Shown here piece after piece: positions 19,671 to 61,759 of a stretch of DNA of 64,000 nt (position 1 is the stretch's first letter; each line of letters opens with the position of its first letter). The notes below the pieces were generated by a model that was not told where the DNA came from, did not search any database, and saw only the letters and a program-made list of their open reading frames with translations. Origin of the DNA: Paragordius varius (lineage: Eukaryota > Animalia > Nematomorpha); assembly GCA_964247055.1 (NCBI GenBank), contig OZ176052.1:434001-498000 (forward strand). Direction: 5' to 3'. A program made the position numbers and the translations under genes.

Positions 19671-19701
<31 letters not shown>

Positions 19702-19719: not shown

Positions 19720-19850
19720 ATCTATTCCTATAAGCTTATCTGCTGCGATTTCTAAAGAGGTCCATAATATTTAATTTATTTTTCTGCGCTTGCCTATCTC
19801 TCACCATCGGGACCACCTGGTATTGCATTATCTCCAGGAGTGGCCCAAAC
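19720..19850 (+). ncRNA. U2: Degenerate U2 snRNA 3' fragment with an internal deletion
   Basis: atctattcctataagcttatctg...ctaaagaggtcc...cacctggtattgcattatctccaggagtggcccaaac. Confidence 0.85.
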
Positions 19851-39846: not shown

Positions 39847-40290
39847 ACGTGTAAGCCCTAAAAAAGCACCGTTCCTGATATTTTATTCTATCGGCATAGA
39901 TATATTTATCAGCTTATCTTTATAATACAGGACAATGTTTGATTTAATTTTTAAACTAAAATAGTGTTCAAAACAGTATTATAGTTAAAAGATTGAGCTC
40001 TGGGATATGTAACGTCCCTTATACATCGGAGACAAAAAAGTTAAAACGTCATTAAGTTCAAATTCAATTTATAAGGTTTAAATGCGCTGGCAAAATTAAG
40101 CATAAAATTTATATATATTTTACAAAATAAAATGTTATGTTATGGCAATTATATATATTTTAAACGTTAAATGCTGTTGTGGTACTTTACTCCATTATTT
40201 TTTAATTCTAAATTTATTTTACAAATAATATATATTTTCAACACCTTACACCATTTTTTATTATCGTGCATTTCTTTCAATTTATTTATT
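39847..40290. repeat. Dispersed repeat, direct copy at about 62816-63240
   Basis: Shared cacgtgtaagcc...aaagattgagctctg(g/a)gatatgtaac. Confidence 0.6.
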
Positions 40291-40720
40291 ACAAATCAAT
40301 CACTATTATCCCTCTTTTTATGATAAAAATATTGTTTCGCTAGATTTATTTTAAATTTTACTAAGTTCATGATACAATCGTTAATTTTTAAAAAATTATA
40401 GTTTCAATTTTTCTACCAATATTATTTTATAATTTATAAGTATGTTTCTCATTTGTATTTTTTGGTCCATAATGTTATTTTTATTTTTGGAGATTTGGTT
40501 CCTGGTATAAATACTAAAGTGGCCTGATATCGATACACATTACTGGAATTGTTTAAAACCTTTTTTAACAAACACAACATATTTATAACTCATAATATCA
40601 ATTCACCAATTTTTTAAACTTAAAAAAATTTCATTTTTTCTATGATAATTTTTTTATAAAATTTGTTAAAATTTTATCTGTTTGAAAAAAAAATGTTTCT
40701 AAATTGATTTTAATGATTGT

Positions 40721-40874
40721 GTTTGGGCCACTCCTGGAGGTACTGCAATACCAGGTTGACCCGATGGGGAGGGATAGGCAAGCCCAGAGCGCCTCCCCAA
40801 AATCTCCAAAAATAAATTTAATATCATGGACCTCTTTAGAGGTCGTATCAGATATTAAGCTGATAAGAACAGAT
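40721..40874 (-). ncRNA. U2: Well-preserved U2 snRNA 3' part (nt about 38 to end), disrupted by Utopia
   Basis: atctgttcttatcagcttaatatctgatacgacctctaaagaggtcc, Sm site atttttgg, SL IV cctggtattgcagtacctccagg. Confidence 0.95.
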
Positions 40875-43800
40875 TTTAATTTATTTACATAATATATATA
40901 TAATAATAAAAAAAAAGATGCATGTGTTTAATTATAATATATTTTTATATTAGATTGATCAATGATGGCAATGAAGTGGTGATTTACAAATTATTTAAAA
41001 TTTATAATAAATATTGTAATAAAAATATTTTACGTGTAAAAAAAATAACCTCCAGTGGAGGAAAAAAAAAATAGGAGAGAAAAACCCCGGACGGGGTTAG
41101 AAAAAAACTCTCCCAAAGGAATCTTTGTTGGATCCTGTTGGTTGGTTTGAATCTAGCACAATTCCGTTTTCGTTCGACGTCTGTTGTATTGGTGGGGGAT
41201 CAACGAAGGTAGCAGCGTCTTGTCCTGGCGTCATTTGAGATGTTGATTGGAAGTGATCATCGTTGGTTGAGTTGAAGGTTGTTTCGGCAGTTGTTAGTGA
41301 ATTGACTTGATTAGGTTTGGTTGAGGCGTTCGTTACACTGTCGGGAGGTTCGACTCCATTTTTAAACTCGTACCAGAGCCGTGATGAGTGTCGTATTGTA
41401 GAACTTATCATCAGGCTTCTGAGCCGAGAAATAGAGGAACTAGTAATATTCTTCAAACCTTCGTCGTTTTTGGGGAACCATGATCCTAGACTTCCGACAA
41501 CCAGTGGGAGTATCTTGACTTCGTTTGAGTTATTAGACAATAAGGGAATCAAAGGGGTATATTTTTCTACCTTATTGTCCCAAGCCGAAGCCAAGGCCGC
41601 CCACCGATCATCGAAAGGACAGGTCACGTCGATGATGTATATAATGCCGCGGAATTTAATTACTAAGTCAGGTTTGGGGAGGGAGGCTGGGTAGGAATTC
41701 TCGGACATGATTTCAGCGCCACAAGATAAATGTGTTTTTAGTATAGTGACGATGGAATCATGCCGAGATCTCCATGAACGCGAAAATCTTAAACAATGGT
41801 TAAAAATATGGGGTAGAGTTTCGGGATGGCGCCCGCATCGCCGACAGGAGGGGTTATGAGAGGAGCCGGGTCGAGTGTTTGTTGGAAGTAAATTAAGGCG
41901 AGCTCGATGGATAAATCTCCAATCTCGGAAAGAAATGCCTGAACCGGTTGTAATAAATGAAGAGCTGGCTTTGTGTAGGGAGGCTGCCTCGATGGCACGA
42001 CCTTGCGAAGGACACGCGATAAGATTTTTTAAAAACGAATTAGTGAACTTAGAGTAAATTGTACGAACTAGCGCGCGACGGGAGAACGGGTCAATGTTGA
42101 AGTTATCACCTTTTATATAGAAGTGGGAATTGGAGTATTCCCATTGGAGGTTGAGTCGCTTGGATGCCAAGCGAGATTGACTGAAGATGTTGGAAACACC
42201 AAAGGAATTTAAATTGTTAGAACCTGAGAGAAATTCGGAAATATCGGATTCAGAAGGGGTTTCGATTTTAACCCTTTGGGAAATGGTAGCTAAAAGGGTG
42301 GAAAAGGCGTGTTGGGAAATGGACGGATCAGAGCTGGAGAGAAGTTTAAAAGCTGAATCTAATCTGTAGATATCGGAAAGAAGGGATGTTTTGGGAATAC
42401 CTAGACCGCCTTTAGAGACTGGAATATAAAAGTAGTTTGTGGAGGCTCCCTGGGGAAGCGATGTGATTTTCCTTATTATATTACGAATTCGGGAATCTAT
42501 TTTATTTAAGTCAGATTTAGACACCGATCCCATACGAAATTTATGGGTCAGTGTTGGGAAAACAAATGTTTTTAAGGCATCTAGAATCTGCCATGGTTTC
42601 AGGTTAGATGAAACTATGGTTTCTATTGCCAATAGGAGATCCGATAAGTTGTCTGGTGGAACCAGCAAGCCTATCGGTTTTCCAAGGTAATCGTGGGCCT
42701 GGCCTTCCTGCAAAGAAGGAACCACATGTCCATCTATTTCTAGATGTAAAGTGGATAACCCTCCCTGAGTAGGCTGATAATTTAGTAGTTTGGATTTATG
42801 CGGGTTGATTTGAATTCCAAGCTGGTCAAGAAGTGATTTGGCTAAACTTGCACTATATTTAATATTATCATTATTATTAGATATGATCACCAAGTCATCA
42901 GCATAAGCGAGACAGGTGGTGTCATGAGTGTTGTTCAAGGAGGATATCAGGGGATTGATGACTAAATTAAAAAGAAGTGGGGAAATAGGACATCCTTGGC
43001 GAGTTCCTCTTTTAAGAAAAATGGGGTCGGATAGGGCTCCTTCGTTTAGAATACGAGTGGAGGAATCAAAGAAAAGATAAGAAAGAATTGAAAACAAATT
43101 TTCAGAAATACCTATACCACGAAGGGCCGCCGAGATAGCGCTATGGGGGACTGAATCAAAAGCTGAAGCCACATCGAGCCACAGAAGGATGCATGGACGT
43201 CGATGTTGTCTGGCAGAGGACAGTTTTTCTGAAATGAGGAAATTATGTTCGAGAACTCCATCATAAGGCATAAATCCTTTCTGCTGGGGGGAAACAATGT
43301 TGTTTTTGGACAGGTAGGTCGCGAGAGACTTGGAAATAATCTTTGCAAAGATTCTATAGCTGGTATCTAGGAGAGAAATGGGCCTAAAATTGGCGGGGTT
43401 ATCGGCGTTGCCCGACTTGTATATAGGAATTAAAGTAGAGACTTTCCAGGCCGTCGGGATAAATCCAGAGGATAGAACTTTGTTGAATATAAGTGATAGG
43501 ACCCTGAAGTTTGGATCAATTAAAAGCCAATGTCTAGCTGCTATTCTGTCCGGTCCCGCCGATGAGTTGAGGCAAGATTTGACAGCAACTTGGATACTAG
43601 GTTGGTCGATTGATGGAATATCAAAAGTATTTGGGGATACTGTGCAATACAAGTGACCAAAGTCTTTCTCTTCACAACTTGCCCAAAGAGACTTATAATG
43701 TTGTAGTTGTTCGGTAATAGGAGCAGAGCAAAATTTGCGGGTCGGATTGAGTAAGTTTCGAATCGTTCTCTTTTTGTTCCGGTTATATTGTTTTTGTATA

Positions 43801-43976
43801 GAATATGGCGTTTTGTTTTTAGCTGTATTTATAGTAGATGTCTTCGGAAGTAGAGATAATTTATCTTGTATTGTTTGTATTATTGAATTGTAAATAATGT
43901 CAAAATCTTCCTGAGTCTCTGACACATCGATCGAGGATGCAATCGACTCTATTTCCAGTCTGCAATTATTAGGATT
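40875..43976 (-). mobile_element. Utopia (U2-targeting NeSL-group non-LTR retrotransposon), 5'-truncated, lineage A
   Basis: RT + CCHC + REL ORF, about 220-bp AT-rich 3' UTR, 3' junction at U2 ATCTGTTCTT. Confidence 0.9.
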
Positions 43977-43991
43977 AAAACGTATGCCCAT
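41097..43991 (-). CDS. 964-aa reverse transcriptase with zinc knuckle and restriction-like endonuclease
   Basis: GPD, QKGF, LDVASAFDSV, GTRQGCPISPLLFNL, LAYADDL, YLG, KGGLG, CRRCGRHPETLPHIFNHC, RHD, KPDLV..IIDVTCPFD..KVEKY; no N-terminal zinc fingers seen. Confidence 0.95.
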   Translation of the reverse strand: MGIRFNPNNCRLEIESIASSIDVSETQEDFDIIYNSIIQTIQDKLSLLPKTSTINTAKNKTPYSIQKQYNRNKKRTIRNLLNPTRKFCSAPITEQLQHYKSLWASCEEKDFGHLYCTVSPNTFDIPSIDQPSIQVAVKSCLNSSAGPDRIAARHWLLIDPNFRVLSLIFNKVLSSGFIPTAWKVSTLIPIYKSGNADNPANFRPISLLDTSYRIFAKIISKSLATYLSKNNIVSPQQKGFMPYDGVLEHNFLISEKLSSARQHRRPCILLWLDVASAFDSVPHSAISAALRGIGISENLFSILSYLFFDSSTRILNEGALSDPIFLKRGTRQGCPISPLLFNLVINPLISSLNNTHDTTCLAYADDLVIISNNNDNIKYSASLAKSLLDQLGIQINPHKSKLLNYQPTQGGLSTLHLEIDGHVVPSLQEGQAHDYLGKPIGLLVPPDNLSDLLLAIETIVSSNLKPWQILDALKTFVFPTLTHKFRMGSVSKSDLNKIDSRIRNIIRKITSLPQGASTNYFYIPVSKGGLGIPKTSLLSDIYRLDSAFKLLSSSDPSISQHAFSTLLATISQRVKIETPSESDISEFLSGSNNLNSFGVSNIFSQSRLASKRLNLQWEYSNSHFYIKGDNFNIDPFSRRALVRTIYSKFTNSFLKNLIACPSQGRAIEAASLHKASSSFITTGSGISFRDWRFIHRARLNLLPTNTRPGSSHNPSCRRCGRHPETLPHIFNHCLRFSRSWRSRHDSIVTILKTHLSCGAEIMSENSYPASLPKPDLVIKFRGIIYIIDVTCPFDDRWAALASAWDNKVEKYTPLIPLLSNNSNEVKILPLVVGSLGSWFPKNDEGLKNITSSSISRLRSLMISSTIRHSSRLWYEFKNGVEPPDSVTNASTKPNQVNSLTTAETTFNSTNDDHFQSTSQMTPGQDAATFVDPPPIQQTSNENGIVLDSNQPTGSNKDSFGRVFF

Positions 43992-46137
43992 TCCAATTGC
44001 AATAGTAAAAATTAATCAATCATTTATCAATACGCCGACTTTATATTAGGCCCTCTGTTTTGTTCCACCCCGTGTAAAAATCGGGTTTTTCCAAAAAATA
44101 GAAGTCCGATTTTAAGTTTGAACGACGTTTCCGAAAAACGTGTGGGCCAGGTTTAATAAAGTACTTTTTGTATTTAGTATGCCCTTTTTGATAATTATCC
44201 CCTCACGTTTAGCCATACACTTATAAAAATAGGGTTTATTAAATAAGTGAATTTTGAGACAGATAATACACAAATATGCATCCGTTCAATAAAGTCCAAA
44301 TTTTTACACTTGTATACAAGCCATTCATTTCAGTCCTTCGATTAAAATTGGGTTAGTTGGATACCTCAGGCCTGTTTAAAATTAAATAATTTAAATTATA
44401 CAGAAGGAATCGAAACTGGCAAAATTTTGCACAAAGCGAAATATATAATAAATTTTATTCAAAAATACTAAATATTTCTTTTTTAATGTAAAACTCAAAG
44501 GTAAAAATATAATCAATGTAACATATGTGCATTGACTAAATTGAATAATAATACATAATAAACCATTCTTGCTATTTCTATTAATAAAAATTAGCTTTAA
44601 TTTCACATTAGAATCAACGAAACACTTTGCAATTTTTTTGTAAAATAAAAATGGCATTTAGGTAGTTTGAAAATAAACTTTTTTTTCAAATTGAACTTTT
44701 ATTTAGATAATTTGGCTCTTTTATAAAATTTTTATTAGGTAGAAGCATAAATTTAAATTGGACTGTTTACTTCAGTAGTTTTTTAGAAATATATTTTAAA
44801 TTTAGTTTGGGGTATTTAAATACCCCAATTTGAATCTAAGTGTTAAGTACGTTAAATGTGCATTATGCATTTTATGGTTGCTTATTTTACATTGGGCGAT
44901 TCACAACACAGTAGTGTATGGAAAAAAGAAATAATTTATTAACCATTTTGTTGTTTTTCTATACAATACTGCACATATTTCCAAACCCTTGTGGATTAAG
45001 CAACCATTAAAATGCCGACTGTAAAATGTTTTCTATGCTTAAGTACCATTAATTTACTTTAATTTTATAGCTAATAAATATTTTTTACATTTTAGTGGCC
45101 TTTGTAATTTTTATCAAATATATATATATATATATATTTTCAGTCTTATTCGGGATTTTACAATAAAAAAATAATGCGGATAAAAGGTCGAAGAATGTAA
45201 ATATCCTAAAATAATTTCTCGCTAATTGCCGCACAAACTTTAAAAGTGATATGGACCTATTATTATAGATATAATATGGCTTTGGTTAAATATATAAAAA
45301 CCGGTCTCAAAAATCGTATGTTTTGCAAACCCTTTCAGAATTTAAACTGCCAATTATATACATCATGTTCTATAAATACTACTTTTTATCTTAAAGGAGT
45401 TTAACCAAAAAGATACAAAAAAAGTTTTTCCATAAATAAAGATAGTTGGTAAATTTAATTTGTGATAAGCTTCAGTTTAACACATTTTTTTAAAAATCAT
45501 GATAGCTTGGCACAAATTATCCTAAGCCGTTTTAAATTTGTTTTTTACTTTTAGGAGGGTTTGCACAAAATTTTAAACGAAGTTTTAATATATCCTGATC
45601 AGGTTTTTATTAAAATTCTTACTTTTTATTTATTATGTAATAGAATAATCCAGAATGTTGCATGTATAAAATTACCATATACAACATTGATGCAAATCCT
45701 TTAGCAAAATGGAAATTTCCGATGTGCTCTTCATAAAAATGATAAATAAATAATTTAATCGTGATTTTCGTTAAAGTGCATAGAAGATCGATTTGTATAG
45801 ACAATAGCGAATTTGATTCAAATTAAGAATGAATTAAAGTTTGGTTTTCGGATTGGATTCCGATGCAATTGGGCTGAAGGCTGGGGGCGCATTTCCTGCA
45901 ACAATTGAAATGGCAAGCTAAAATATTTTTAAATAAAATATTTTTTAAAGCATAAATTATCAAAATGCATAGTTGTAATGTTATATTTAAATAATAAGTT
46001 TATTATATATTTGAGAAAAAAAAGTTTTTTTAATGAAACATGAATGGTTGGTGTAACAGACAAAGACGGTTTCCAAACTAAAATGCTGGTAAAAATAAAA
46101 ATTCAAGCAATAAAACTCAATTATAAAAAACTTTTCT
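43977..46137. repeat. Segment S1, near-identical inverted duplicate of 58988-61148
   Basis: Mirrored identical ORFs (44391-44657 = 60468-60734; 45619-45804 = 59321-59506); both copies 2161 bp. Confidence 0.95.
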
Positions 46138-46561
46138 AGCAAAATATCGCAAAAACGATCACAATTTGCTCGCCATAAAATCTTGCAGTAAGCAAAAGTA
46201 CTTAAATAATGCATTTTCCAAATCTCAAAAAGTATCTTTATCTGGAAAGGTCTTAGAACCAACAACCAATGCAAATACTATTCATATAAATAATCCCAAA
46301 TTAATACGAAATCAAAATCCGATTGTTTCAAATACACCATTTTGTCAAGGTTATCAATCGACAAACTCAAATTATAACATTGCAATCGACTCGTCTACAT
46401 TTCATCAAGACTTTCATTATTTAAATCAGAGGACTCTATTACCACAATCTGAAATTTACGGCTTTCATAAAACATATATGCAAATTTGAATAAAAACATT
46501 GTATTTATACATAAAATTTATTTAGTGAATAAATTTTTTACGAAAATCATGCCGGTCATAC

Positions 46562-46597
<36 letters not shown>

Positions 46598-47752
46598 ATT
46601 TACAATTCTAATTCACCCTTAACTAATTCACCCTAAAAATAAATTGTGTTTTCGGGCAAATTTTCATCATTATAAAAAAGCAAATTCTAATGGCATAAAT
46701 TATTATTTTTTCAGTAATATGTTAATTTTAAACGAAATTTTATTTTTTAAAAATATTAAAAAATATAGGTATTTTTTAATCTAAAAAAACACATTTTATT
46801 TTGGAATGAATTTAAATTGTTCGAGGGTGAATTTGAATCGTTCAAGGGTGAATTTAAATTTTAAATGGTATATGTATATATATAGAACAATTTAGTAGAA
46901 TAGATTGAAGACCTCCAAATTTACAATGTATTTTTTATAGATATTTAAACATATAAATAAAGTTTATAAGATTATAAATAATAAGGGTTCTTTTGAAGAA
47001 TTCTGAATTATGTAAGTATCTTTTTGATGTAAATTTATATCACATTGCCTTAATAAAATTATTACGTAAAAACTTTCAAATTAGTTACTGCCTTATATTA
47101 TTAACACTTGAGAACCCTTGCTTCAAATACATAAGAAGGTGTTCCGATTGCTATAAACTTGTTTGTTGTTTGTATAAATATTATAAAAAACGATACACAT
47201 ATAGACAGGAAGGTATTTTAAAGTAAAATTTATGTACAAGTATAAGCGAATTAAAACAAACGACTTATTTTATAATTATTAATAATTAGCTGTCAAAATG
47301 TAATAAAAAAGATTTTAATAATTTTTATACTAAAAGTCTGAAATAAGGATCCTTAAGCATTTATTTACTGATTTTAGATATCGTTCCAGGGTAAAAAACT
47401 GCCCTAAAAAAGTATACGGATCATCATATAATTTATTTGTTACTGACATTTTCCTAATACTAAATGATTAATAAAGATCTGAGGAATAGTACAGTAGCGT
47501 ATACAGTAAAAGATTATTAGTGCAAAATAATCTTAATGAACACAAAACAGGGTGATATTATGGATATGTTTATAAATAGGACTGAATGATAATTAATATA
47601 TGAAAATTGTCCCCCTGTTTTGTGTTCATTAAGATTATTTTTCACTAACAATCTTTTACTGCATACGCTACTGTAAATAGAGTTAAACCCTTTTTATGCG
47701 TATTTTTCTGTGAGTTAGCTCGTTTTACCTCTTTTTTTAATAAATGATTTTA
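46138..47752. repeat. Segment S2, inverted duplicate of 53839-55501
   Basis: Mirrored identical ORFs (46166-46489 = 55150-55473; 46993-47226 = 54365-54598); the 48-bp length difference lies in the (TA)n tract. Confidence 0.95.
47492..47673. mobile_element. 182-bp Tc1-like MITE with about 70-bp TIRs (mirror copy 53918-54099)
   Basis: TA|CAGTAGCGTATACAG...CTGCATACGCTACTG|TA. Confidence 0.75.
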
Positions 47753-50700
47753 ATTTTTGTGCAACGCTATTTATGGCATATCACGTTTTAACTTTTTTCC
47801 CACAAATCAATTAAAACGTTTTTTTTTCATTTATTTGTGTTAACAGTAAAATTGTATAATCTTTATTATATTTAAGCGTACTTTTCATAAGCGTTTTAGA
47901 CCCAAGGTCCGAGGGTGAGTAATATTTGGAGTCATTCGCGTTATTTTCAGTTTGCAAAATTGTTATTGTTAAATCCCAAAAAACCGCTATTACGTAATAC
48001 CGATAACAAAATAAAATTATAAAAATGGCTGTGATGTATTTTGAGGTTAAGCACCCGTTAATAAATGGGTTTAATAATTATGGATGAATATTAGGAAGTA
48101 TCGCCAAAAAGTGGGTTTAATTAACTTGAATACCAGAAATTCAATAAAATTATTTGGGAAACAGGCGCGGATTCATCCTTGTTGAGATAATTAATAAAAT
48201 CGTACATATGTAAATTTATGTATGTTTGTTTTAAAAAGTGACTCAAATTTTGTTGCAAAACCGTCTGACATCAACAAAATTTTAATATTCCCCCATCTCC
48301 AAAAGACATAAATAAGCGAATGTGATGGAGAGCCATTAAAGAAAGTTGAAAATCCGATTTATAAAATCAACATTGGACTGCATGCCATATTTAAAGATAC
48401 TGAATTCGATTTAGGCAGATATATCGCAAATTAATAATTTTATTATGTTAATAACGTGAGAAATTTTTCCAGACCGTATCATGCATCAGAAAGAAATAAA
48501 GATATTGATTTATGGAACATCATCTATCATCTAAAAAACAACTCACTCAGTTACACTAATTTGCATATTTTAATGCCCATATAAATATTTTATTGTCGTT
48601 TTAAAGTGATTAAAAATCAGTGTGAAAAAAATTATATTTTATAAACAGACACAACAAAAAATAGGCGATGAAAATAATAAAAAACAGTGGGCATGAAAAT
48701 CCAAGCTTGTCTTAAGTTCAGAGTCTACCTCACTCAAAATAGCCTAAAATCCAAACGCTAAAAACCATTTTATTTTTTGAAACAATATAAATTAAACTAC
48801 GATTATGGTCTGACGATTTTAAATTGTAGGTTTAATGGCTTCTAAATATACAAAAAAGATTAATTTCATACAAATATAATTTTGCTAGGACAATAGATAA
48901 TCTTGATAGTGTGTAAAAATTAAAAAGTAATCGGTGATAAATATACTTGTAATGACGGCATTTGGAATACAGTGTAACGCTTTTGACAGACATTTTAATA
49001 TTTAAAAATCATTTGCATTTCAACGAAATAAATGTTTAATATAATTTGAAACATAAATAATTTATTTTCCAGAACGAAAACATCAGTAATCAGCAAAAAG
49101 CCGCCATATAGGTAAATAGTAAATATTTTAAGCGATTATTGTTTTACAAAACTTTTTTATCAATTATTGTATTTTAGCGATTTTTCAATAAAATCTTGTT
49201 TTAATGATAAGGCCCAATTGAAAATTATGAGGAAATCAGTTTTTGAAACAATATGTTTATTAAGTCGCTTATTTACAACTCTACAAGATTTTCTTTTACA
49301 ATCTTTTAGCATTTCTTATGTTATTCATAATAGAGTGGTGCTCTACTGTAATTTTAGTTAATATGAATCACAAGTTGAATACGTGTTAATAAAAAAGATT
49401 GAGCAATGAAAACTAAAACATATTTTAAGTTTCAATTACGTTTATACATTTTTCTTTTCCCTAAAATATTCTAATGAAGAGAAGGCATGCCCATAATAAT
49501 AGTATATGCAATATAAAATTTGCACACATGGAAAAGAGTAATTTTCATGAAGTGCAGAAATTTATTTATCTTTTTAGGTATTTTTACATCTTAAAGAAAA
49601 AAATAAAAACACATTTGGTCGCATAAATTCTCAATTGATATTATTTTCCCTTCTATAAATAAAGAAAAGAATTACCGGCTTTATTTTTCGCTTATTTTTA
49701 TATGGTAATTTATTAAATAAATGTATATCAATATTTTTGTGAATTTTTTTAATTTACAATCTGCATAAGTTACAAATGATTTTATTATCTGCATTATTAC
49801 ATTTTTTCGCGGCATCTGCAACAAAGTTTTTTTTTCCATTTTAATTATATTTTATTTTATATACAGTCATGTATATGTAGAATTGACAGAAATTCGTTTT
49901 TAAATGATTATAATTTGTTTTTAATTGTTTTATTGTTTGATGTGTCAACTTTCAACATGCGCATTTTTAAGCATTAAAATAAAAATAGCTTATTTATTGT
50001 AAACAATAAAAAACAAAGTAAAATCAATTAAAAACGTATATCTGACAATTCTAAACATACATGACTGTAATCATTTTTCATAATTTTAAGCCCTTATTTT
50101 ATATCGTTTAATTCCAAATTTGAATCTATCTTAAATGGTTACTATTGGAGATTTGCCTTATTCTTCAAGTTAATTATGCACCATTTAAAAGTTATATTCC
50201 TCGCGCTTTAAATATAAAACAGTATCAAAAACTATATTTTCTCTTTCATTATCAAATTTACGGATTTATATTTTTACAATTTATTCTTGTATTAGTACAA
50301 ATAATTTTTATATATCGTTATATATAATAAAATATTTTTTTACCGTAGAAAATTGATGCAAATTACATGTATTCTTTTGGAGATTGTTTTATTTGAAAAA
50401 CACTAGAAATTATTCTAATATCCTAGTCAAAATTTTTTTTTATATTTAAAATCATATTCATCATCCCAACATTTGTATAGAATTATAATAATAATAAATT
50501 TATTGTGTGATATTTACAATATATAATGCTGGATATGGATAATATAATAAATACAGGTAAATTAACACACAGAGATAATGTATATACAAACAAAATTCTA
50601 AAACAAATGGATATAATGTGTATAGAAAGCATCTATATAAAAATGGTGAAAATGTGAGAGCAACATTGTAAAATTATCACAATTTGTAACAAAATATAGA

Positions 50701-50840
50701 GTAATTGGTATCATTCGATAGCTAAAAAAATGCCTTTTTCAACTATTTAAATTCGAAAAAAGAATATAAAGGTGAAAATAATGCCTCAAATTCCGGAAGG
50801 AAATAAATTTATATTGAAGAATGAAAATTTGTATGTGGTT

Positions 50841-50867
50841 ATCGCTTCTCGGCCTCTTGGCTAAGAT
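50841..50867 (+). ncRNA. U2: U2 snRNA 5' fragment (nt 1-27), truncated at a duplication breakpoint
   Basis: ATCGCTTCTCGGCCTCTTGGCTAAGAT differs from canonical U2 nt 1-27 at one position. Confidence 0.9.
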
Positions 50868-52050
50868 TTTTGGAAATGAAACCACAATCAAATCATTAAC
50901 CTTAAAAAAAAATTAACCGACTTCATATTTGGACAGTATTTTTTCGGCCACTATACCGGACTAACTCTATTATTTGAAAAATGGTTTTTTTTACATGTTT
51001 TGAAAACTGTTTTAACTAACCTGTACATTGTAATCCCTGTCTTCTGAGACCTAAAAGTAATTTTTTACAGGAAAGGCAAATGGTCGGAACATAATATGTA
51101 TGAGCTTCTAGATTGTGGCTTATTCCACGCGTTCGTCTTTCGGAATCTTGACAGATATTAAAGAAAATATCAAATTAAAGCGTTTTATAAAATATAATGT
51201 GTAAATAATTATACCAATGTCTTCTGGGGCAGTTGTGGATTTTATTCCGAATTCACTCTATTATAATATAAAAAAAATGCGTTTAAGTGACCAAAGCGTG
51301 TGGTTTAATAGAGAAATTATAATTACAGTAAAAATGAAAATTATACGGACAAATAAAAATAAAGACAAATATTTTTATCTAAATGACAACCATACTTTTA
51401 ATCTTTTTATAGCAATATATCATTGTTTTAAATGGCAAAAAGAGAAGAGATTATAATACTAACACAATCCATATTACAATTGTATATGAGAAGAATTAAG
51501 GTTTTAAAAAGTTAATTGTCTTTTAAAAAATATTTGTCCTTAAATTTTTACGTTATGTCCGTATAATTTCAATTTTTATTGTAATTACAGTAAATATGGA
51601 AATTATACAGACAAAATATAAGCAATTTTCAAGGTCAAATTTAACCTTAGCCCAAATTAGTAACACACTCAATTCTAAATTTCAAAATTGTAATTAGTTT
51701 ATATGGGTAAAATAAAAGTTTGAAAAGGTATGGTTGTTATATTTTTAAAAATAATTGTCTTTTGCTTTTATGATGTTATCTGTAAAATCTCAATTTTTAT
51801 TGTTAAAAAAATATATGTTTAAAAACTCTTTTTATTGTCAACACACTTGGTCATATACCAAACGTTACTGTATTTTGATATAATGGTATTTTGGCCAAAT
51901 TAATAAGCGTTTATCTATATAGCAATGCAAAACCGGATCTACCGTCTTATTTTTAACGATATGTGGCTTTATAATGTCTAATTAAAAATTCAAAAACCAT
52001 AACATAACATATCAGCGGTCAAATGGATTGAAAATTTTAAATAACTAAAC

Positions 52051-52341
52051 CTTGCCGACAGGATTAGATATAATTCGACCAGCTGTTGTGTCTCCCAAAT
52101 TATTTGAATCCTCTTGGTTATTTCTCGAATAATTATTCCTTTGCTTAAATAATTGGCTTTGGGAACAATCGTTTGGGACTTTTGTGGCACACCTTTTATG
52201 AAACGGCCTTCCACATCCACTGCACTTTAGTCCTTGGAGAATAAGACCAAAAATCATGGTACCGCAAAAATCACAAAAAGCTGGACTTGTAAAACAATGC
52301 GCATGCAATGAATGTGGGCAAGAATTATAATTTGGTTGCAT
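52051..52341 (-). CDS. Duplicate C1a exon of the PKD-like gene; duplicate C1b exons at 51021-51146 and 45823-45917
   Basis: Reverse complement of 57337-57627, 58532-58657 and 59208-59302. Confidence 0.7.
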
Positions 52342-53703
52342 TTTTATCACGATTTTCGCAACAAAAAAAAAAATGTATGTGTACAACAATGTTGCCAAAT
52401 TTGGAAACGAAAAAAATGAGAAATAAAACGAGAGAAAAAATTTTAGTGAAAGTTTTTTTAGCTGATATAGTACGCAAGGCAGTAAATATTATGTTGCCTT
52501 TGTTATAATTATATATAGTAATTTTATTTTAAACAATTGTTGTACCTTGAAAATGACGCATCTTTGCTACCATATTTATAATTATTGCTTTAAAAAAGTA
52601 TTTAAATATTTTCGTTGCTTATTAAACATAAAAGCAATATAAATAATAACAAAAAATAAAAGAGGAAAAATTAATTTATTAAATGCATAATTAATTGGCA
52701 TAGGATAACTGAATTCACCATTCAAATTCTTTCACACAATTTTCGTAACAAAAACTGTTGCCAGTGGAAATCTAAAAGAGTTTAAAAACTCAATCAACAA
52801 CTTGATTCAAATTGTAATCTCGCTCCATATCGATGAGATGCAAATTAGCAGCATTCTCATTAGTATTAGCCGTACTATCTTGAGAATTATTTTGAGTTCC
52901 ATTTTCCAACATTTTAAACAAATAATCGTTTTCGTGGATTAAAATACTCCTGAGATGACATAGGAAATCAATGTATTCATGAACAAATTTACATGTACTT
53001 ACCTATATAATTATTTTAGGAAGAAAAACCATAGTAGCCCGCGATTGTCCATTTACTACCAGATTGGGGACTTGACTTGCGGCTGAAATGGTTTGACTTA
53101 TCAAATTGCGGTGACGATTTCTTTGAAGTTAACAGTAATAGTTTAAATAAAAACCTTTCAAGTTCTGTATGCTTATCTTTATACGTGGTCATTTAATATT
53201 TTTCTAACGATTCAAAATAATATAGATATCAGACAAAAAAATCTAAAACCCTAATTAAAAGACCTGTCAAATTGTTTTTAAAAAGTTTATATTACATAAA
53301 ATTTTTCAAAAGTTCATTTGAGTGTTGAAAAAATAACGTTCCTAATTAATGGAAGTTGTTAATTAAAAATGACAGTTTTGAAAAGGCAAAAGGGGTACAC
53401 CACTTGTTATGTGTTATAAGATAGAAAATAAGTTATGTAAAAGTTTGAGTGACATATGAACTCTTGAAAAGTGAGATTTTTAATATTTTTAGCATTTATA
53501 GAAAAAATACAGTAGTGTATAGTAAAATTCAACGAATGGTTGAATTTAAACAATTTTATTCCTATATTTTAACATTTTGTTTATTTTATGAATAGACTTT
53601 ATTTTTTTGAAATATTATATATTACAAGTAAAAAAATTAGATAATACAAAATTTATTGATGATTGATTGCACCCAATAAATATATTTTGTTTAATGTTAA
53701 AAG

Positions 53704-53838
53704 GGGCCGCTTTTTTTGATAAAGAATCGTGCAACATTGTAGAGAAACATAGTTGTCCAAATCGAAGGCAAAGGACATCTTTCACGCCACATCAACTAAA
53801 AATATTGGAAAATGCATTCTCAGAATCCCACTATCCAG
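53704..53838 (+). pseudogene. Truncated homeobox exon copy, broken after ...SHYP
   Basis: Identical to the intact exon up to CACTATCCAG, then joined to the inverted S2 copy. Confidence 0.85.
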
Positions 53839-54993
53839 TAAAATCATTTATTAAAAAAAGAGGTAAAACGAGCTAACTCACAGAAAAATACGCATAAAAA
53901 GGGTTTAACTCTATTTACAGTAGCGTATGCAGTAAAAGATTGTTAGTGAAAAATAATCTTAATGAACACAAAACAGGGGGACAATTTTCATATATTAATT
54001 ATCATTCAGTCCTATTTATAAACATATCCATAATATCACCCTGTTTTGTGTTCATTAAGATTATTTTGCACTAATAATCTTTTACTGTATACGCTACTGT
54101 ACTATTCCTCAGATCTTTATTAATCATTTAGTATTAGGAAAATGTCAGTAACAAATAAATTATATGATGATCCGTATACTTTTTTAGGGCAGTTTTTTAC
54201 CCTGGAACGATATCTAAAATCAGTAAATAAATGCTTAAGGATCCTTATTTCAGACTTTTAGTATAAAAATTATTAAAATCTTTTTTATTACATTTTGACA
54301 GCTAATTATTAATAATTATAAAATAAGTCGTTTGTTTTAATTCGCTTATACTTGTACATAAATTTTACTTTAAAATACCTTCCTGTCTATATGTGTATCG
54401 TTTTTTATAATATTTATACAAACAACAAACAAGTTTATAGCAATCGGAACACCTTCTTATGTATTTGAAGCAAGGGTTCTCAAGTGTTAATAATATAAGG
54501 CAGTAACTAATTTGAAAGTTTTTACGTAATAATTTTATTAAGGCAATGTGATATAAATTTACATCAAAAAGATACTTACATAATTCAGAATTCTTCAAAA
54601 GAACCCCTATTATTTATAATCTTATAAACTTTATTTATATGTTTAAATATCTATAAAAAATACATTGTAAATTTAAAGGTCTTCAATCTATTCTACTAAA
54701 TTGTTCTATATATATACATATACCATTTAAAATTTAAATTCACCCTTGAACGATTCAAATTCACCCTCGAACAATTTAAATTCATTCCAAAATAAAATGT
54801 GTTTTTTTAGATTAAAAAATACCTATATTTTTTAATATTTTTAAAAAATAAAATTTCGTTTAAAATTAACATATTACTGAAAAAATAATAATTTATGCCA
54901 TTAGAATTTGCTTTTTTATAATGATGAAAATTTGCCCGAAAACACAATTTATTTTTAGGGTGAATTAGTTAAGGGTGAATTAGAATTGTAAAT

Positions 54994-55077
<84 letters not shown>

Positions 55078-55149
55078 GTATGACCGGCATGATTTTCGTA
55101 AAAAATTTATTCACTAAATAAATTTTATGTATAAATACAATGTTTTTAT

Positions 55150-55521
55150 TCAAATTTGCATATATGTTTTATGAAAGCCGTAAATTTCAGATTGTGGTAA
55201 TAGAGTCCTCTGATTTAAATAATGAAAGTCTTGATGAAATGTAGACGAGTCGATTGCAATGTTATAATTTGAGTTTGTCGATTGATAACCTTGACAAAAT
55301 GGTGTATTTGAAACAATCGGATTTTGATTTCGTATTAATTTGGGATTATTTATATGAATAGTATTTGCATTGGTTGTTGGTTCTAAGACCTTTCCAGATA
55401 AAGATACTTTTTGAGATTTGGAAAATGCATTATTTAAGTACTTTTGCTTACTGCAAGATTTTATGGCGAGCAAATTGTGATCGTTTTTGCGATATTTTGC
55501 TCTCCGGTTTTGAAACCATAT
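55150..55521 (-). CDS. PRD-class homeobox gene, last exon (IWFQNRRAKYRK...YMQI*)
   Basis: Acceptor ttag|ATATGGTTTCAAAACCGGAGA, in frame with ORF 55150-55473. Confidence 0.85.
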   Translation of the reverse strand: MWFQNRRAKYRKNDHNLLAIKSCSKQKYLNNAFSKSQKVSLSGKVLEPTTNANTIHINNPKLIRNQNPIVSNTPFCQGYQSTNSNYNIAIDSSTFHQDFHYLNQRTLLPQSEIYGFHKTYMQI

Positions 55522-55776
55522 CTAATATTAGATAAGGCATTATACTTTATTTATTAAATAATTTATATAATTAATATTTGTGTTACTTAATGGATTTAAT
55601 CTAAATGTCAAATCATCATATAATTTTCAAAAAAAAGTGTTAAATTAATTTAATTATGAAAAAATTATCCAATTAAAACCACTAATTAATAATATTGGTA
55701 CATAACACATTCTTTGCTAAATTCTATATTATAATTGTGGCATAATTAATTTAATGAAGTTTAAAAATAAATAAAC

Positions 55777-55970
55777 CTGAATTTTGGCTTCGTTTAAGTG
55801 AATAAGTTTGGCCAAGTCCTCACGAGCATAAACATCTGGATAGTGGGATTCTGAGAATGCATTTTCCAATATTTTTAGTTGATGTGGCGTGAAAGATGTC
55901 CTTTGCCTTCGATTTGGACAACTATGTTTCTCTACAATGTTGCACGATTCTTTATCAAAAAAAGCGGCCC
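55777..55970 (-). CDS. PRD-class (Q50 paired-like) homeobox exon, residues 1-46
   Basis: [45 protein letters not shown], then a GT-AG intron 55776-55522 at the 46/47 position typical of the PRD class; start exon not located. Confidence 0.9.
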
Positions 55971-57336
55971 CTTTTAACATTAAACAAAATATATTTATTG
56001 GGTGCAATCAATCATCAATAAATTTTGTATTATCTAATTTTTTTACTTGTAATATATAATATTTCAAAAAAATAAAGTCTATTCATAAAATAAACAAAAT
56101 GTTAAAATATAGGAATAAAATTGTTTAAATTCAACCATTCGTTGAATTTTACTATACACTACTGTATTTTTTCTATAAATGCTAAAAATATTAAAAATCT
56201 CACTTTTCAAGAGTTCATATGTCACTCAAACTTTTACATAACTTATTTTCTATCTTATAACACATAACAAGTGGTGTACCCCTTTTGCCTTTTCAAAACT
56301 GTCATTTTTAATTAACAACTTCCATTAATTAGGAACGTTATTTTTTCAACACTCAAATGAACTTTTGAAAAATTTTATGTAATATAAACTTTTTAAAAAC
56401 AATTTGACAGGTCTTTTAATTAGGGTTTTAGATTTTTTTGTCTGATATCTATATTATTTTGAATCGTTAGAAAAATATTAAATGACCACGTATAAAGATA
56501 AGCATACAGAACTTGAAAGGTTTTTATTTAAACTATTACTGTTAACTTCAAAGAAATCGTCACCGCAATTTGATAAGTCAAACCATTTCAGCCGCAAGTC
56601 AAGTCCCCAATCTGGTAGTAAATGGACAATCGCGGGCTACTATGGTTTTTCTTCCTAAAATAATTATATAGGTAAGTACATGTAAATTTGTTCATGAATA
56701 CATTGATTTCCTATGTCATCTCAGGAGTATTTTAATCCACGAAAACGATTATTTGTTTAAAATGTTGGAAAATGGAACTCAAAATAATTCTCAAGATAGT
56801 ACGGCTAATACTAATGAGAATGCTGCTAATTTGCATCTCATCGATATGGAGCGAGATTACAATTTGAATCAAGTTGTTGATTGAGTTTTTAAACTCTTTT
56901 AGATTTCCACTGGCAACAGTTTTTGTTACGAAAATTGTGTGAAAGAATTTGAATGGTGAATTCAGTTATCCTATGCCAATTAATTATGCATTTAATAAAT
57001 TAATTTTTCCTCTTTTATTTTTTGTTATTATTTATATTGCTTTTATGTTTAATAAGCAACGAAAATATTTAAATACTTTTTTAAAGCAATAATTATAAAT
57101 ATGGTAGCAAAGATGCGTCATTTTCAAGGTACAACAATTGTTTAAAATAAAATTACTATATATAATTATAACAAAGGCAACATAATATTTACTGCCTTGC
57201 GTACTATATCAGCTAAAAAAACTTTCACTAAAATTTTTTCTCTCGTTTTATTTCTCATTTTTTTCGTTTCCAAATTTGGCAACATTGTTGTACACATACA
57301 TTGTTTTTATTCTTTGTTGCGAAAATCGTGATAAAA

Positions 57337-57627
57337 ATGCAACCAAATTATAATTCTTGCCCACATTCATTGCATGCGCATTGTTTTACAAGTCCAGCTT
57401 TTTGTGATTTTTGCGGTACCATGATTTTTGGTCTTATTCTCCAAGGACTAAAGTGCAGTGGATGTGGAAGGCCGTTTCATAAAAGGTGTGCCACAAAAGT
57501 CCCAAACGATTGTTCCCAAAGCCAATTATTTAAGCAAAGGAATAATTATTCGAGAAATAACCAAGAGGATTCAAATAATTTGGGAGACACAACAGCTGGT
57601 CGAATTATATCTAATCCTGTCGGCAAG
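57337..57627 (+). CDS. Protein kinase D-like C1a domain exon
   Basis: [50 protein letters not shown] fits the C1 spacing H-x12-C-x2-C-x13-C-x2-C-x4-H-x2-C-x7-C; exon end uncertain. Confidence 0.8.
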
Positions 57628-58531
57628 GTTTAGTTATTTAAAATTTTCAATCCATTTGACCGCTGATATGTTATGTTATGGTTTTTGAATTTTTAATTAG
57701 ACATTATAAAGCCACATATCGTTAAAAATAAGACGGTAGATCCGGTTTTGCATTGCTATATAGATAAACGCTTATTAATTTGGCCAAAATACCATTATAT
57801 CAAAATACAGTAACGTTTGGTATATGACCAAGTGTGTTGACAATAAAAAGAGTTTTTAAACATATATTTTTTTAACAATAAAAATTGAGATTTTACAGAT
57901 AACATCATAAAAGCAAAAGACAATTATTTTTAAAAATATAACAACCATACCTTTTCAAACTTTTATTTTACCCATATAAACTAATTACAATTTTGAAATT
58001 TAGAATTGAGTGTGTTACTAATTTGGGCTAAGGTTAAATTTGACCTTGAAAATTGCTTATATTTTGTCTGTATAATTTCCATATTTACTGTAATTACAAT
58101 AAAAATTGAAATTATACGGACATAACGTAAAAATTTAAGGACAAATATTTTTTAAAAGACAATTAACTTTTTAAAACCTTAATTCTTCTCATATACAATT
58201 GTAATATGGATTGTGTTAGTATTATAATCTCTTCTCTTTTTGCCATTTAAAACAATGATATATTGCTATAAAAAGATTAAAAGTATGGTTGTCATTTAGA
58301 TAAAAATATTTGTCTTTATTTTTATTTGTCCGTATAATTTTCATTTTTACTGTAATTATAATTTCTCTATTAAACCACACGCTTTGGTCACTTAAACGCA
58401 TTTTTTTTATATTATAATAGAGTGAATTCGGAATAAAATCCACAACTGCCCCAGAAGACATTGGTATAATTATTTACACATTATATTTTATAAAACGCTT
58501 TAATTTGATATTTTCTTTAATATCTGTCAAG

Positions 58532-58657
58532 ATTCCGAAAGACGAACGCGTGGAATAAGCCACAATCTAGAAGCTCATACATATTATGTTCCGACCATTT
58601 GCCTTTCCTGTAAAAAATTACTTTTAGGTCTCAGAAGACAGGGATTACAATGTACAG
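58532..58657 (+). CDS. C1b domain, first-half exon
   Basis: HNLEAHTYYVPTICLSCKKLLLGLRRQGLQCT, then a G|GTTAGT donor; not in the supplied ORF track. Confidence 0.8.
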
Positions 58658-59207
58658 GTTAGTTAAAACAGTTTTCAAAACATGTAAAAAAAACCATTTT
58701 TCAAATAATAGAGTTAGTCCGGTATAGTGGCCGAAAAAATACTGTCCAAATATGAAGTCGGTTAATTTTTTTTTAAGGTTAATGATTTGATTGTGGTTTC
58801 ATTTCCAAAAATAAATGCCTTACTATTATAAATAAACATAAAATGCAAAAATTAACCACATATATTAATTACATGCCATTCTTGTTTAAAAAACTTTTTG
58901 TTCGAATAAAATAGAAAACAAAATTGGAAAGAACTTTAAACATGTATTAAAAATTGGTAACGTTTCTTGAAAAGCTACAATATTTAAAGAAAAGTTTTTT
59001 ATAATTGAGTTTTATTGCTTGAATTTTTATTTTTACCAGCATTTTAGTTTGGAAACCGTCTTTGTCTGTTACACCAACCATTCATGTTTCATTAAAAAAA
59101 CTTTTTTTTCTCAAATATATAATAAACTTATTATTTAAATATAACATTACAACTATGCATTTTGATAATTTATGCTTTAAAAAATATTTTATTTAAAAAT
59201 ATTTTAG

Positions 59208-59302
59208 CTTGCCATTTCAATTGTTGCAGGAAATGCGCCCCCAGCCTTCAGCCCAATTGCATCGGAATCCAATCCGAAAACCAAACTTTAATTCATTCTT
59301 AA
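59208..59302 (+). CDS. C1b domain, second-half exon, ending in a stop
   Basis: ttttag|CT TGC CAT... gives (A)CHFNCCRKCAPSLQPNCIGIQSENQTLIHS*; phase matches the upstream donor. Confidence 0.75.
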
Positions 59303-61439
59303 TTTGAATCAAATTCGCTATTGTCTATACAAATCGATCTTCTATGCACTTTAACGAAAATCACGATTAAATTATTTATTTATCATTTTTATGAAGAGCA
59401 CATCGGAAATTTCCATTTTGCTAAAGGATTTGCATCAATGTTGTATATGGTAATTTTATACATGCAACATTCTGGATTATTCTATTACATAATAAATAAA
59501 AAGTAAGAATTTTAATAAAAACCTGATCAGGATATATTAAAACTTCGTTTAAAATTTTGTGCAAACCCTCCTAAAAGTAAAAAACAAATTTAAAACGGCT
59601 TAGGATAATTTGTGCCAAGCTATCATGATTTTTAAAAAAATGTGTTAAACTGAAGCTTATCACAAATTAAATTTACCAACTATCTTTATTTATGGAAAAA
59701 CTTTTTTTGTATCTTTTTGGTTAAACTCCTTTAAGATAAAAAGTAGTATTTATAGAACATGATGTATATAATTGGCAGTTTAAATTCTGAAAGGGTTTGC
59801 AAAACATACGATTTTTGAGACCGGTTTTTATATATTTAACCAAAGCCATATTATATCTATAATAATAGGTCCATATCACTTTTAAAGTTTGTGCGGCAAT
59901 TAGCGAGAAATTATTTTAGGATATTTACATTCTTCGACCTTTTATCCGCATTATTTTTTTATTGTAAAATCCCGAATAAGACTGAAAATATATATATATA
60001 TATATATTTGATAAAAATTACAAAGGCCACTAAAATGTAAAAAATATTTATTAGCTATAAAATTAAAGTAAATTAATGGTACTTAAGCATAGAAAACATT
60101 TTACAGTCGGCATTTTAATGGTTGCTTAATCCACAAGGGTTTGGAAATATGTGCAGTATTGTATAGAAAAACAACAAAATGGTTAATAAATTATTTCTTT
60201 TTTCCATACACTACTGTGTTGTGAATCGCCCAATGTAAAATAAGCAACCATAAAATGCATAATGCACATTTAACGTACTTAACACTTAGATTCAAATTGG
60301 GGTATTTAAATACCCCAAACTAAATTTAAAATATATTTCTAAAAAACTACTGAAGTAAACAGTCCAATTTAAATTTATGCTTCTACCTAATAAAAATTTT
60401 ATAAAAGAGCCAAATTATCTAAATAAAAGTTCAATTTGAAAAAAAAGTTTATTTTCAAACTACCTAAATGCCATTTTTATTTTACAAAAAAATTGCAAAG
60501 TGTTTCGTTGATTCTAATGTGAAATTAAAGCTAATTTTTATTAATAGAAATAGCAAGAATGGTTTATTATGTATTATTATTCAATTTAGTCAATGCACAT
60601 ATGTTACATTGATTATATTTTTACCTTTGAGTTTTACATTAAAAAAGAAATATTTAGTATTTTTGAATAAAATTTATTATATATTTCGCTTTGTGCAAAA
60701 TTTTGCCAGTTTCGATTCCTTCTGTATAATTTAAATTATTTAATTTTAAACAGGCCTGAGGTATCCAACTAACCCAATTTTAATCGAAGGACTGAAATGA
60801 ATGGCTTGTATACAAGTGTAAAAATTTGGACTTTATTGAACGGATGCATATTTGTGTATTATCTGTCTCAAAATTCACTTATTTAATAAACCCTATTTTT
60901 ATAAGTGTATGGCTAAACGTGAGGGGATAATTATCAAAAAGGGCATACTAAATACAAAAAGTACTTTATTAAACCTGGCCCACACGTTTTTCGGAAACGT
61001 CGTTCAAACTTAAAATCGGACTTCTATTTTTTGGAAAAACCCGATTTTTACACGGGGTGGAACAAAACAGAGGGCCTAATATAAAGTCGGCGTATTGATA
61101 AATGATTGATTAATTTTTACTATTGCAATTGGAATGGGCATACGTTTTCCCCAAGCTTTAGGCTCACACCTCTTATTTTTATTAATACATAGATTAACTT
61201 TGGAAAATTTTAACTTACAATTTATTTGATATTTTTTTAGTTTTATAGAGGTATTTGTTATTATCTAATTTCATAGCGCGAATTTTGGATAAAGTTAAAA
61301 AATGTCCAAATGAAAAGTTTTTATATTTTCAGGAAATGAGGGTTTGATAATAAATTTTAACCAAAAAACTTTCAGAAACAATATTTTGTCTACTTAAAGC
61401 ACTGGGCTGTAAACTCGTAAAAAAATCAGATAATAAATA

Positions 61440-61716: not shown

Positions 61717-61759
61717 AAACAACATAATGTAATAAATTTTAAAAAAATTTAAAATTACA

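Follow-up and report, generated by a model that had tools for sequence, protein, structure and literature searches.

How can what appears to be a single U2 snRNA gene come to lie in two halves, 10 kb apart and on opposite strands, with a U2-targeting retrotransposon attached to one half and inverted duplicates of host DNA lying between them? We addressed this question in a window of 64,000 nt of the Paragordius varius genome (the whole stretch of DNA that was analysed), in which duplicate pairs were defined by self-BLAST. The gene halves, their flanks and the element are arranged as follows.

40000-40720, minus strand: downstream flank of the U2 gene (Lf), single copy, in its ancestral position
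40721-40874, minus strand: U2 snRNA from nt 39 to the 3' end, the same as the matching part of the intact U2 in L012
40875-43976, minus strand: 5'-truncated Utopia-type RLE non-LTR retrotransposon, by its RVT_1 domain, R2 match and U2 site
47753-50840, plus strand: U2 upstream flank and promoter region (u1), single copy, inverted with respect to the ancestral order
50841-50867, plus strand: U2 snRNA nt 1-27, matching the genome's own intact U2 at 27/27 positions

The Rfam model RF00004 matches 40718-40919 (-) with 121 bits, the true match beginning only at model position ~38, and the sequence, read by eye, resumes with ATCTGTTC at 40874. The U2 of Paragordius varius carries one A more (GATCAAAGTGTAGTATCTG), which puts the start of the 3' half at nt 39 and the loss between the halves at 11 nt (28-38); the initial annotation, which had U2 from nt 38 onward and about 10 nt missing, was correct in its coordinates and is amended in these two figures. 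The 27-nt string of the 5' half occurs once in the window, 100 shuffles gave 0 matches at ≤3 mismatches, and the 770 nt upstream of it share 86-92% identity with other U2 loci. On the other side, Lf is colinear with the flank of an intact U2 at C3:525604-526785 (97.6% over 40453-40874) and with L017.

The element contains an open reading frame of 964 codons (41097-43991, -), the first 5 of which lie inside the adjoining duplicate, segment A. The predicted protein has an RVT_1 domain (E 1.2e-37; R2/NeSL-like RT type), and its best solved relatives are R2 proteins (E 3.5e-58), the match beginning at R2 residue 310; its residue 21 aligns with residue 399 of the ORF of the element in L017, and its identity with another U2-inserted element of the same genome is 32%. 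Towards the C terminus the translation contains a CCHC motif (CRRCG...HIFNHC), then a PD-(D/E)xK-type motif (KPDLV...IIDVT...EKY); a zf-RVT match is weak, and R2 chains match over a second stretch as well. As far as sequence motifs can tell, a C-terminal zinc finger and a predicted restriction-like endonuclease are present, and by RT type, C-terminal motifs and precise U2 3' junction the element is classed as Utopia-type. At this junction the tail gives way to ATCTGTTCTTATCAG at 40874 and U2 takes over at nt 38/39, and the junction is identical in the C4 copy and in L017. This copy is young, because its reading frame is still open despite 5' truncation. In arthropod-type insertions, which have no target duplication, the 5' part of U2 lies directly upstream; at this copy it is not found there on the same strand, and the 5' end of the element adjoins segment A. 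A copy of the same family at C4:7260-8323 (99% identity) is a normal, clean insertion with U2 on both sides, and the Utopia/U2 copies at C4, L014, L015 and L017 have both U2 halves on one strand with no loss. The presence or absence of U2 sequence directly upstream is a property of the insertion, not of the Utopia element.

Between the element and the right flank, the duplicates and the joints between them are the following.

43976/43977: joint J1, Utopia 5' end with segment A
43977-46137, plus strand: segment A, inverted copy of 58988-61148, 100% identical over 2161 nt
46137/46138: joint J2, A with B, blunt and without GT-AG
46138-47752, plus strand: segments B and C, inverted copy of 53839-55501
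50865-50867: joint J4, U2 nt 27 with D, sharing a 2-nt AT overlap
50866-53838, plus strand: segment D, inverted copy of 55836-58812, 99.9% identical, displaced
53838/53839: joint J5, D with c, blunt
53839-61148, plus strand: right arm, in the order c, b, x (55502-55835), d, y (58813-58987), a, which matches the ancestral order
61149-62000, plus strand: right flank (Rf), ancestral continuation of a, with L010 unbroken over 60460-61998

The left part (43977-53838) is made up of three flipped pieces, A, B-C-u1-U2(1-27) and D, and the inverted duplication totals ~6.7 kb; x (334 nt) and y (175 nt) are single copy and absent from the left part. Overlaps at J2, J5 and J4 are 0, 0 and 2 nt, and none of these joints has splice signals; no longer copy of this Utopia family was found, and microhomology at J1 is therefore left out of these figures. 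Both duplicate boundaries fall where the initial annotation had set them, with self-BLAST placing the start of A at 43977, directly beside the Utopia 5' end (43976), and the start of D at 50866, adjoining U2 nt 1-27 (50841-50867, +). Its statement that host genes had been copied holds for the copying, but what was copied are gene fragments only: D contains a C1-domain exon (-) and a homeodomain exon (+) severed at J5, so that in the left copy the homeodomain exon ends at the D|c joint after 28/57 domain positions.

The ancestral order can be read from a paralogous unit 50 kb away, at C3:525604-536811, which contains an intact U2 and runs downstream flank, U2, u1, c, b, x, d, y, a. The paralogs L014, L015 and L017 agree with this order, and C-u1-U2 is colinear in all three as well as at C3:526954-530152. 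The right arm aligns in one piece over 55066-59394 to the paralog L003 (88.5%), and also to C3:531735-536055. Judged against these paralogs, the right arm (53839-61148) retains the ancestral order and the left part (43977-53838) is derived. Since L010 is unbroken across the equivalent of 61148, 43976/43977 is a derived joint; J2 likewise lacks the 3.5 kb, y'-D-x', found between A and B in all paralogs. D was considered as a mobile element and rejected, as A-y'-D-x'-B is colinear in all of the 85-89% paralogs, so D is resident; only a ~280-nt internal repeat of D is dispersed. A U2 5' motif adjoining D was sought in the paralogs and is absent from them, and the U2|D joint is thus no long-standing feature that the units share.

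With the ancestral order given by the paralog, both U2 halves sit where one gene should be. J1 and J4 flank a single ancestral position, the Utopia site, where 11 nt are missing, and two ancestral neighbour pairs, Lf with U2 39-end and u1 with U2 1-27, have stayed together as they would in an inversion. The proposal that the halves are one split gene is thus upheld by the colinear intact-U2 paralog and by the placement of both derived breakpoints at one ancestral point, and the comparison supports a single ancestral U2 locus whose parts are complementary but for these 11 nt. Re-inverting 43977-50867, which had been expected to restore the original arrangement, does return the halves to one strand; it does not recover the ancestor, as the A|B join without its 3.5 kb, the displaced D and the lost x and y all persist. 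The two arms are 99.9-100% identical, against 85-89% for all other paralogs, and by this measure the duplicates are very young.

We attribute this arrangement, at a probability of roughly 0.55, to one complex end-joining or template-switch repair of a Utopia integration break. Utopia would have entered one U2 gene, with the usual nick (U2 nt 38/39) priming reverse transcription that halted ~1.2 kb before the element's 5' end and left the cDNA end unsealed to the upstream U2 half. Both break ends would then have been repaired in a single complex event with nearby DNA, probably the sister chromatid: an inverted copy of segment a, which lies 11 kb away, would have been attached to the cDNA end; the 5' side of U2 would have shed 11 nt and been inverted along with its flank; and inverted copies of b-c and d would have been taken in before the chain rejoined the chromosome at c. 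The expected outcome is an inverted U2 5' half and a 6.7 kb inverted duplication with four near-blunt joints. The coupling of this event to integration is what we infer from the anatomy, as is the repair route, which may have been fragment end-joining along the lines of the chromatid staggered-break model or a series of template switches by a cDNA or DNA 3' end; the four new joints and the loss of x and y exceed what a simple staggered break predicts. A single sequence does not tell whether the integration or the break came first. Inverted and chimeric 5' ends are known to arise in target-primed reverse transcription, through L1 twin priming and through template jumping by the R2 reverse transcriptase, a polymerase that shifts to a new template without homology. 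In L1 twin priming the inverted part is the element itself, whereas here it is flanking host DNA. Copying through RNA (a retro-copy or spliced template) was rejected, since the A|B joint lacks GT-AG in either orientation and the inverted piece holds the U2 promoter flank in its only copy; this flank, which lies upstream of the transcription start, cannot derive from RNA.

It is unlikely, in our assessment, that the true locus has the ancestral order with an ordinary 5'-truncated Utopia and that its 9.9-kb inverted filler came from chimeric molecules formed by amplification or ligation, an assembly or library artefact. The near-100% or full identity of the arms would fit such an origin, as would joints that, being blunt or with 2-nt microhomology, are chimera-like. 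Contigs of four public runs (Logan; 100-400 nt) were placed on 48000-53999, a range that holds J4 and J5: those of runs X1, X2 and X3 bridge the C|u1 adjacency, and among the contigs listed none bridges J4 or J5, a length of 100-400 nt being too short to show or exclude such bridging. In run X1, the single contig over 52365-52371 has the right-arm (ancestral) state only, the left D copy being unseen there, which counts against our main reading. In its favour, a contig that carries a second organism label goes on beyond 50867 and includes U2 nt 28-35. An exact-protein look-up in public assemblies of the ORFs spanning J1 and J5 gave no match. However, the placed contigs derive from other, diverged individuals and are informative on presence, not absence. 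Assemblers do not make four novel serial joints at repeats, the three reordered pieces differ from the simple X + rc(X) (rc, reverse complement) of a missed-adapter or duplex read, and two joints lie exactly at the Utopia site, where random chimeras would not place them. Moreover, four small sites set the arms apart, and private derived states, substitutions included, occur on both, so they are two physical copies, and this argues against a single-read chimera; between the copies of B and C the differences are a 48-nt (AT)n length change and 3 substitutions.

We also hold it rather improbable that Utopia inserted normally and that an unrelated rearrangement came later, through a subsequent break near its 5' joint or through palindrome or repeat instability in the U2 cluster. 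That cluster does contain paralogous units in both orientations and many inverted repeats, and the arm divergence of ~0.06% implies that the event is not brand new, yet a random break somewhere in a 17-kb region would have to land no more than a few tens of nt from the Utopia|U2 5' joint and to erase any remaining Utopia 5' sequence while removing just 11 nt of U2; the joined segments also share no homology for ectopic recombination. Units in both orientations on the same contig, with head-to-head Utopia/U2 pairs nearby, could also have supplied the halves from two U2 genes, as neighbouring opposite truncated units whose arms were kept alike by gene conversion in an old palindrome. This origin is very improbable: Lf, U2 39-end, U2 1-27, u1, x, y and Rf are each present once, the halves complement each other except for 11 nt, every other pair of units is no more than 85-89% alike, and gene conversion leaves the sharp blunt boundaries, the A|B deletion and the displaced D unexplained.

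Repair of a Utopia integration break can be set against three bodies of earlier work. In the consulted part of Kojima & Jurka 2015 (PMC4640811), Utopia elements are RLE non-LTR retrotransposons targeting U2 snRNA genes, 5'-truncated copies are often without flanking U2, and integration can lose a 5' fragment of U2. The element studied here resembles those described there in its single ORF with RT, C-terminal zinc finger and restriction-like endonuclease (here predicted from sequence) and in its precise 3' junction, with U2 from nt 39, as well as in the variability of 5' junctions. It departs from that part of the description in that the U2 5' half is neither adjacent nor deleted and survives inverted 10 kb off, and in that an inverted copy of host DNA directly adjoins the 5' end of the element; we met no inversion-duplication outcome for Utopia in the same part of that source. 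Aberrant LINE-1 integration in tumours leads to L1-bridged fold-back inversions and duplications (Rodriguez-Martin et al. 2020, PMC7058536), in which, as here, the 3' junction is canonical and the cDNA end finds its partner in a second DNA end, not in the upstream flank. The partner there can be an inverted sister chromatid, giving an element-bounded copy gain, to which the present one is comparable: a canonical 3' junction at the nuclease site, a 5' end on a foreign flank and a gain of copies are all found at this locus. In contrast, LINE-1 has an APE-type nuclease with loose sites, and its events are somatic, megabase-scale and often dicentric, whereas the element here is site-specific and RLE-type, and the rearrangement is kb-scale, in an assembled animal genome, with a chain that turns back and leaves the chromosome linear and monocentric.

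Staggered breaks are the third precedent, yielding inversions flanked by inverted duplications, with a chromatid version that uses two sister chromatids (Ranz et al. 2007, PMC1885836). Here too a formerly unique flank is duplicated in inverted orientation at a breakpoint and the joins lack repeat homology. The duplications in that study are contiguous and ≤ ~1.9 kb, in contrast to 6.7 kb in three reordered pieces here, with two small losses and one breakpoint that is a retrotransposon integration site. Compared with a contiguous block of that kind, A, B and C fit, while D lies at the other joint and x and y are missing from the copy.

Outcomes similar to this one are on record for LINE-1 in tumours; for R2/Utopia-type elements, and for inherited genomes, we found none. 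Provided that the junctions are real, the locus is a base-pair-resolved natural record of a site-specific RLE retrotransposon failing at 5' sealing, in which every step can be counted because the paralogous ancestor has been kept 50 kb away. It bears on the way in which target-primed integration completes its second half, and on whether inversions and duplicated gene fragments in multicopy RNA gene clusters can stem from such elements, although one locus supports the mechanism by example, not by statistics. The wider proposal in the initial annotation, that these retrotransposons drive palindrome formation and gene duplication, goes beyond what this locus shows. We tentatively raise the doubtful prospect that the 3' end of Utopia cDNA repeatedly lands on an inverted template, this being its own cDNA in head-to-head pairs and host DNA 11 kb away at the present locus. 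Were this true, palindromes and local segmental duplications would arise repeatedly in the germline from a site-specific RLE retrotransposon at snRNA genes, and the element would help shape the U2 cluster at C3:250-540 kb. The head-to-head Utopia/U2 pairs on the same contig form two classes, with arms that are 77-84% alike and stop ~38 nt past the U2 3' end, and may reflect either fold-back copying or separate insertions into two U2 genes that face each other.

Rfam gave three U2 matches in the window. The one at 40718-40919 (minus strand) truly aligns only from model position ~38 onward, and direct reading of that strand shows the A/T-rich tail of the Utopia element giving way at 40874 to ATCTGTTCTTATCAG, with U2 extending to its 3′ end at 40721. 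The U2 start is matched at 27 of 27 positions by 50841-50867 (plus strand); with up to 3 mismatches allowed the window holds no other such match, and 100 shuffles gave none. An intact U2 of this genome reads GGCTAAGAT-CAAAGTGTAGT-ATCTGTTC, and its middle 11 nt are the exact part missing from the window; the small gap proposed in the initial annotation is thus upheld, with its size corrected from about 10 nt. All U2 copies checked (including L012:8786-8980, minus strand, at another locus) carry an extra A on the 5′ side of the branch-point-interaction region, GATCAAAGTGTAG against the usual GATCAAGTGTAG, which shifts Utopia site numbering by one.

The element (40875-43976, minus strand) has a single 964-codon open frame (41097-43991) with an RVT_1 domain; R2 proteins are its closest solved relatives, and a CCHC finger and a PD..D..K nuclease motif can be read in its translation. 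It is 5′-truncated, with residue 21 aligning with residue 399 of the element at the U2 locus L017 and residue 80 with residue 310 of an R2 protein, and a search of the genome found no longer copy of the family. Judged by its sequence, it fits Utopia in the features examined (RT, RLE motifs and a 3′ junction at U2 nt 38/39), as these are set out in PMC4640811.

Paralogous units place the two U2 halves on either side of what was a single U2 position in the ancestor. The window is C3:434001-498000. At C3:525604-536811, on the same contig, an intact U2 (526786-526980, 177.7 bits) lies in the order downstream flank, U2 (minus strand), upstream flank, c, b, x, d, y, a, where c, b, d and a are the right-arm counterparts of duplicate segments C, B, D and A, and x and y are single-copy pieces. 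Identity to this gene is 97.6% for 40453-40874, which cover its 3′ part and the flank downstream, and 86% for 50073-50867, which correspond, in opposite orientation, to its 5′ part and the flank upstream. The order C, upstream flank (u1), U2 is common to the units L014, L015 and L017, and in L017 a different Utopia-like element lies between two U2 halves on one strand. Paralogs of D, at 85-89% on C3, are all colinear with the right arm (b, x of 334 nt, d, y of 175 nt, a), and a continues unbroken into 61149 and beyond in their alignments. Across C3:250000-540000 (loci L003-L018 and L031-L033) lie at least six copies, 85-89% identical and in both orientations, of an ~11-kb unit of downstream flank, U2 gene, upstream flank and, in D, C1-domain and homeodomain exons; Utopia-like elements, from at least two families, occupy most of the U2 genes, and one U2 gene is intact.

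Comparing the window with itself identified four near-identical pairs, the only segments doubled there; the downstream flank (Lf), U2 39-end, U2 1-27, u1, x, y and the right flank are present once each.

Inverted pairs from self-comparison, and derived joints
43977-46137 = 58988-61148, inverted: pair A
46138-46595 = 55044-55501, inverted: pair B
46565-47752 = 53839-55026, inverted: pair C
50866-53838 = 55836-58812, inverted: pair D
43976/7: joint J1, Utopia 5′ end to A
46137/8: joint J2, blunt, no GT-AG in either direction
U2 nt 26-27/start of D: joint J4, 2-nt AT overlap
53838/9: joint J5, blunt, mid homeodomain exon

These coordinates agree with the earlier placement of the Utopia 5′ end and U2 nt 27 each at a duplicate boundary. 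From the paralogs one would expect Lf, U2-3′, Utopia, U2-5′ (same strand), u1 (reversed), c, b, x, d, y, a; the assembly instead has Lf, U2-3′, Utopia / A / B C u1 U2(1-27) / D / c b x d y a. In the derived part, three pieces are individually flipped and stand in a different order, and the copy lacks x and y. Host genes had been described as copied; copies are present, but as fragments, such as the homeodomain exon cut at J5 (28 of 57 domain positions in the left copy, 47 in the right-arm copy). A C1-domain exon also lies in D. A second homeodomain-exon-like stretch in the right flank (61413-61740) is ~80-84% identical to 53628-53838 and 55735-56046, and the homeobox gene itself is locally duplicated.

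Normal Utopia insertions in this genome show no U2 loss and keep both halves on the same strand. No fewer than nine further U2 loci look like such two-sided insertions when judged by coordinates and strand, and four of these were checked by sequence. L014 and L015 read U2 1-37, then element; a same-family copy at C4:7260-8323 (99% identity, 868 nt, 5′-truncated) reads U2 1-39, element, ATCTG, and this clean copy suggests recent activity of the family. Contig C4 starts with (CCTAA)n telomere-type repeats, the Utopia-bearing U2 gene lying ~7.2 kb in (L034, G000:C4:1-10000).

J1 and J4 both map to one ancestral point, the Utopia cleavage site. We put the probability of a real, integration-coupled event at roughly 55%. 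In the simplest account, the 5′ end of the insertion would never have been sealed normally. The piece B-C-u1-U2(1-27) is chromosomal DNA turned round; an RNA-derived copy is ruled out for this piece because it holds the sole copy of u1. The move of D and the loss of x and y add two joints, pointing to end-joining of several fragments or to serial template switches of a cDNA or DNA 3′ end. If the displacement of D is set aside, a model of staggered chromatid breaks (PMC1885836) fits, with inversion and inverted duplication at one breakpoint and the Utopia break as the other; it differs in that here D is displaced, x and y are lost and two more joints exist. Comparable outcomes are known from LINE-1 integration in tumours, where a cDNA end can be bridged, in inverted orientation, to the sister chromatid (PMC7058536). 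The event here belongs to two known kinds, rearrangement that accompanies integration and inversion with duplication at a breakpoint; here it involves an RLE element with a specific target, an snRNA gene, in an animal genome that is AT-rich.

An assembly or amplification artefact is improbable, as each arm carries private changes, which would not be expected from one chimeric molecule.

Differences between the arms
48-nt (AT)n length change
46915-6: CC vs TT
46984: A vs G
52365-52371: GAAT deletion and A vs C

Polarised by paralogs, the derived states are those of the left arm at 46984 and 52365-71 and that of the right arm at 46916; divergence is ~0.06% with the microsatellite left out. A later rearrangement unrelated to integration, which we consider slightly less probable still, would need a random break to hit within tens of nt of the Utopia site in a 17-kb region, and to strip the U2 side of whatever was left of the element yet of only 11 nt of U2. 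That the halves derive from two separate U2 genes is very unlikely, the paralogous units placing both at one position.

Head-to-head same-family pairs, U2(39-end)-Utopia facing Utopia-U2(39-end), occur at five C3 loci.

Head-to-head pairs, each, read along one strand, with the antisense element before the sense element
15459-19880 of the window
C3:257419-261041
C3:264531-268974
C3:317337-321053
C3:503651-507427

They fall into two breakpoint classes, 1164/666 and 681/2034 (query scale), and abut within 0-6 nt; their arms are 77-84% alike and end ~38 nt beyond the U2 3′ end. Clearly, the five loci descend from two original events as segmental copies. Snap-back of a cDNA end would produce exactly this arrangement, but so would two joined insertions, one in each of two U2 genes that face each other. 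Because of this mimicry, and because at least nine U2 loci look normal, the proposal that Utopia at snRNA genes drives palindromes and duplication is a lead, not a result.

Logan contigs from four public runs were placed on 48000-53999, and five public runs contain part of the stretch. With lengths of 100-400 nt and identity mostly of 95-99%, which shows that they come from other, diverged individuals, these contigs give the following picture. Contigs of runs X1, X2 and X3 bridge the C/u1 adjacency; those of X2 continue from the D end into ancestral x′ sequence, a single X1 contig covering 52365-52371 has the right-arm state, and one from X3 (different organism label and study) extends beyond 50867 into CAAAGTGT, U2 nt 28-35. 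At 48384, 48388 and 48399, all four runs, including the second organism label, agree, at full depth, on three letters other than the assembly's, so the assembly has private variants or small errors there. Summed contig depth in all four runs is 100-fold above neighbouring bins at 49800-50200, 51200-51600 and 53800-54000, which indicates short dispersed repeats. The repeat inside D (~51320-51590) has more than 100 genome-wide matches, often on both strands, and looks like a MITE-like inverted-repeat element.
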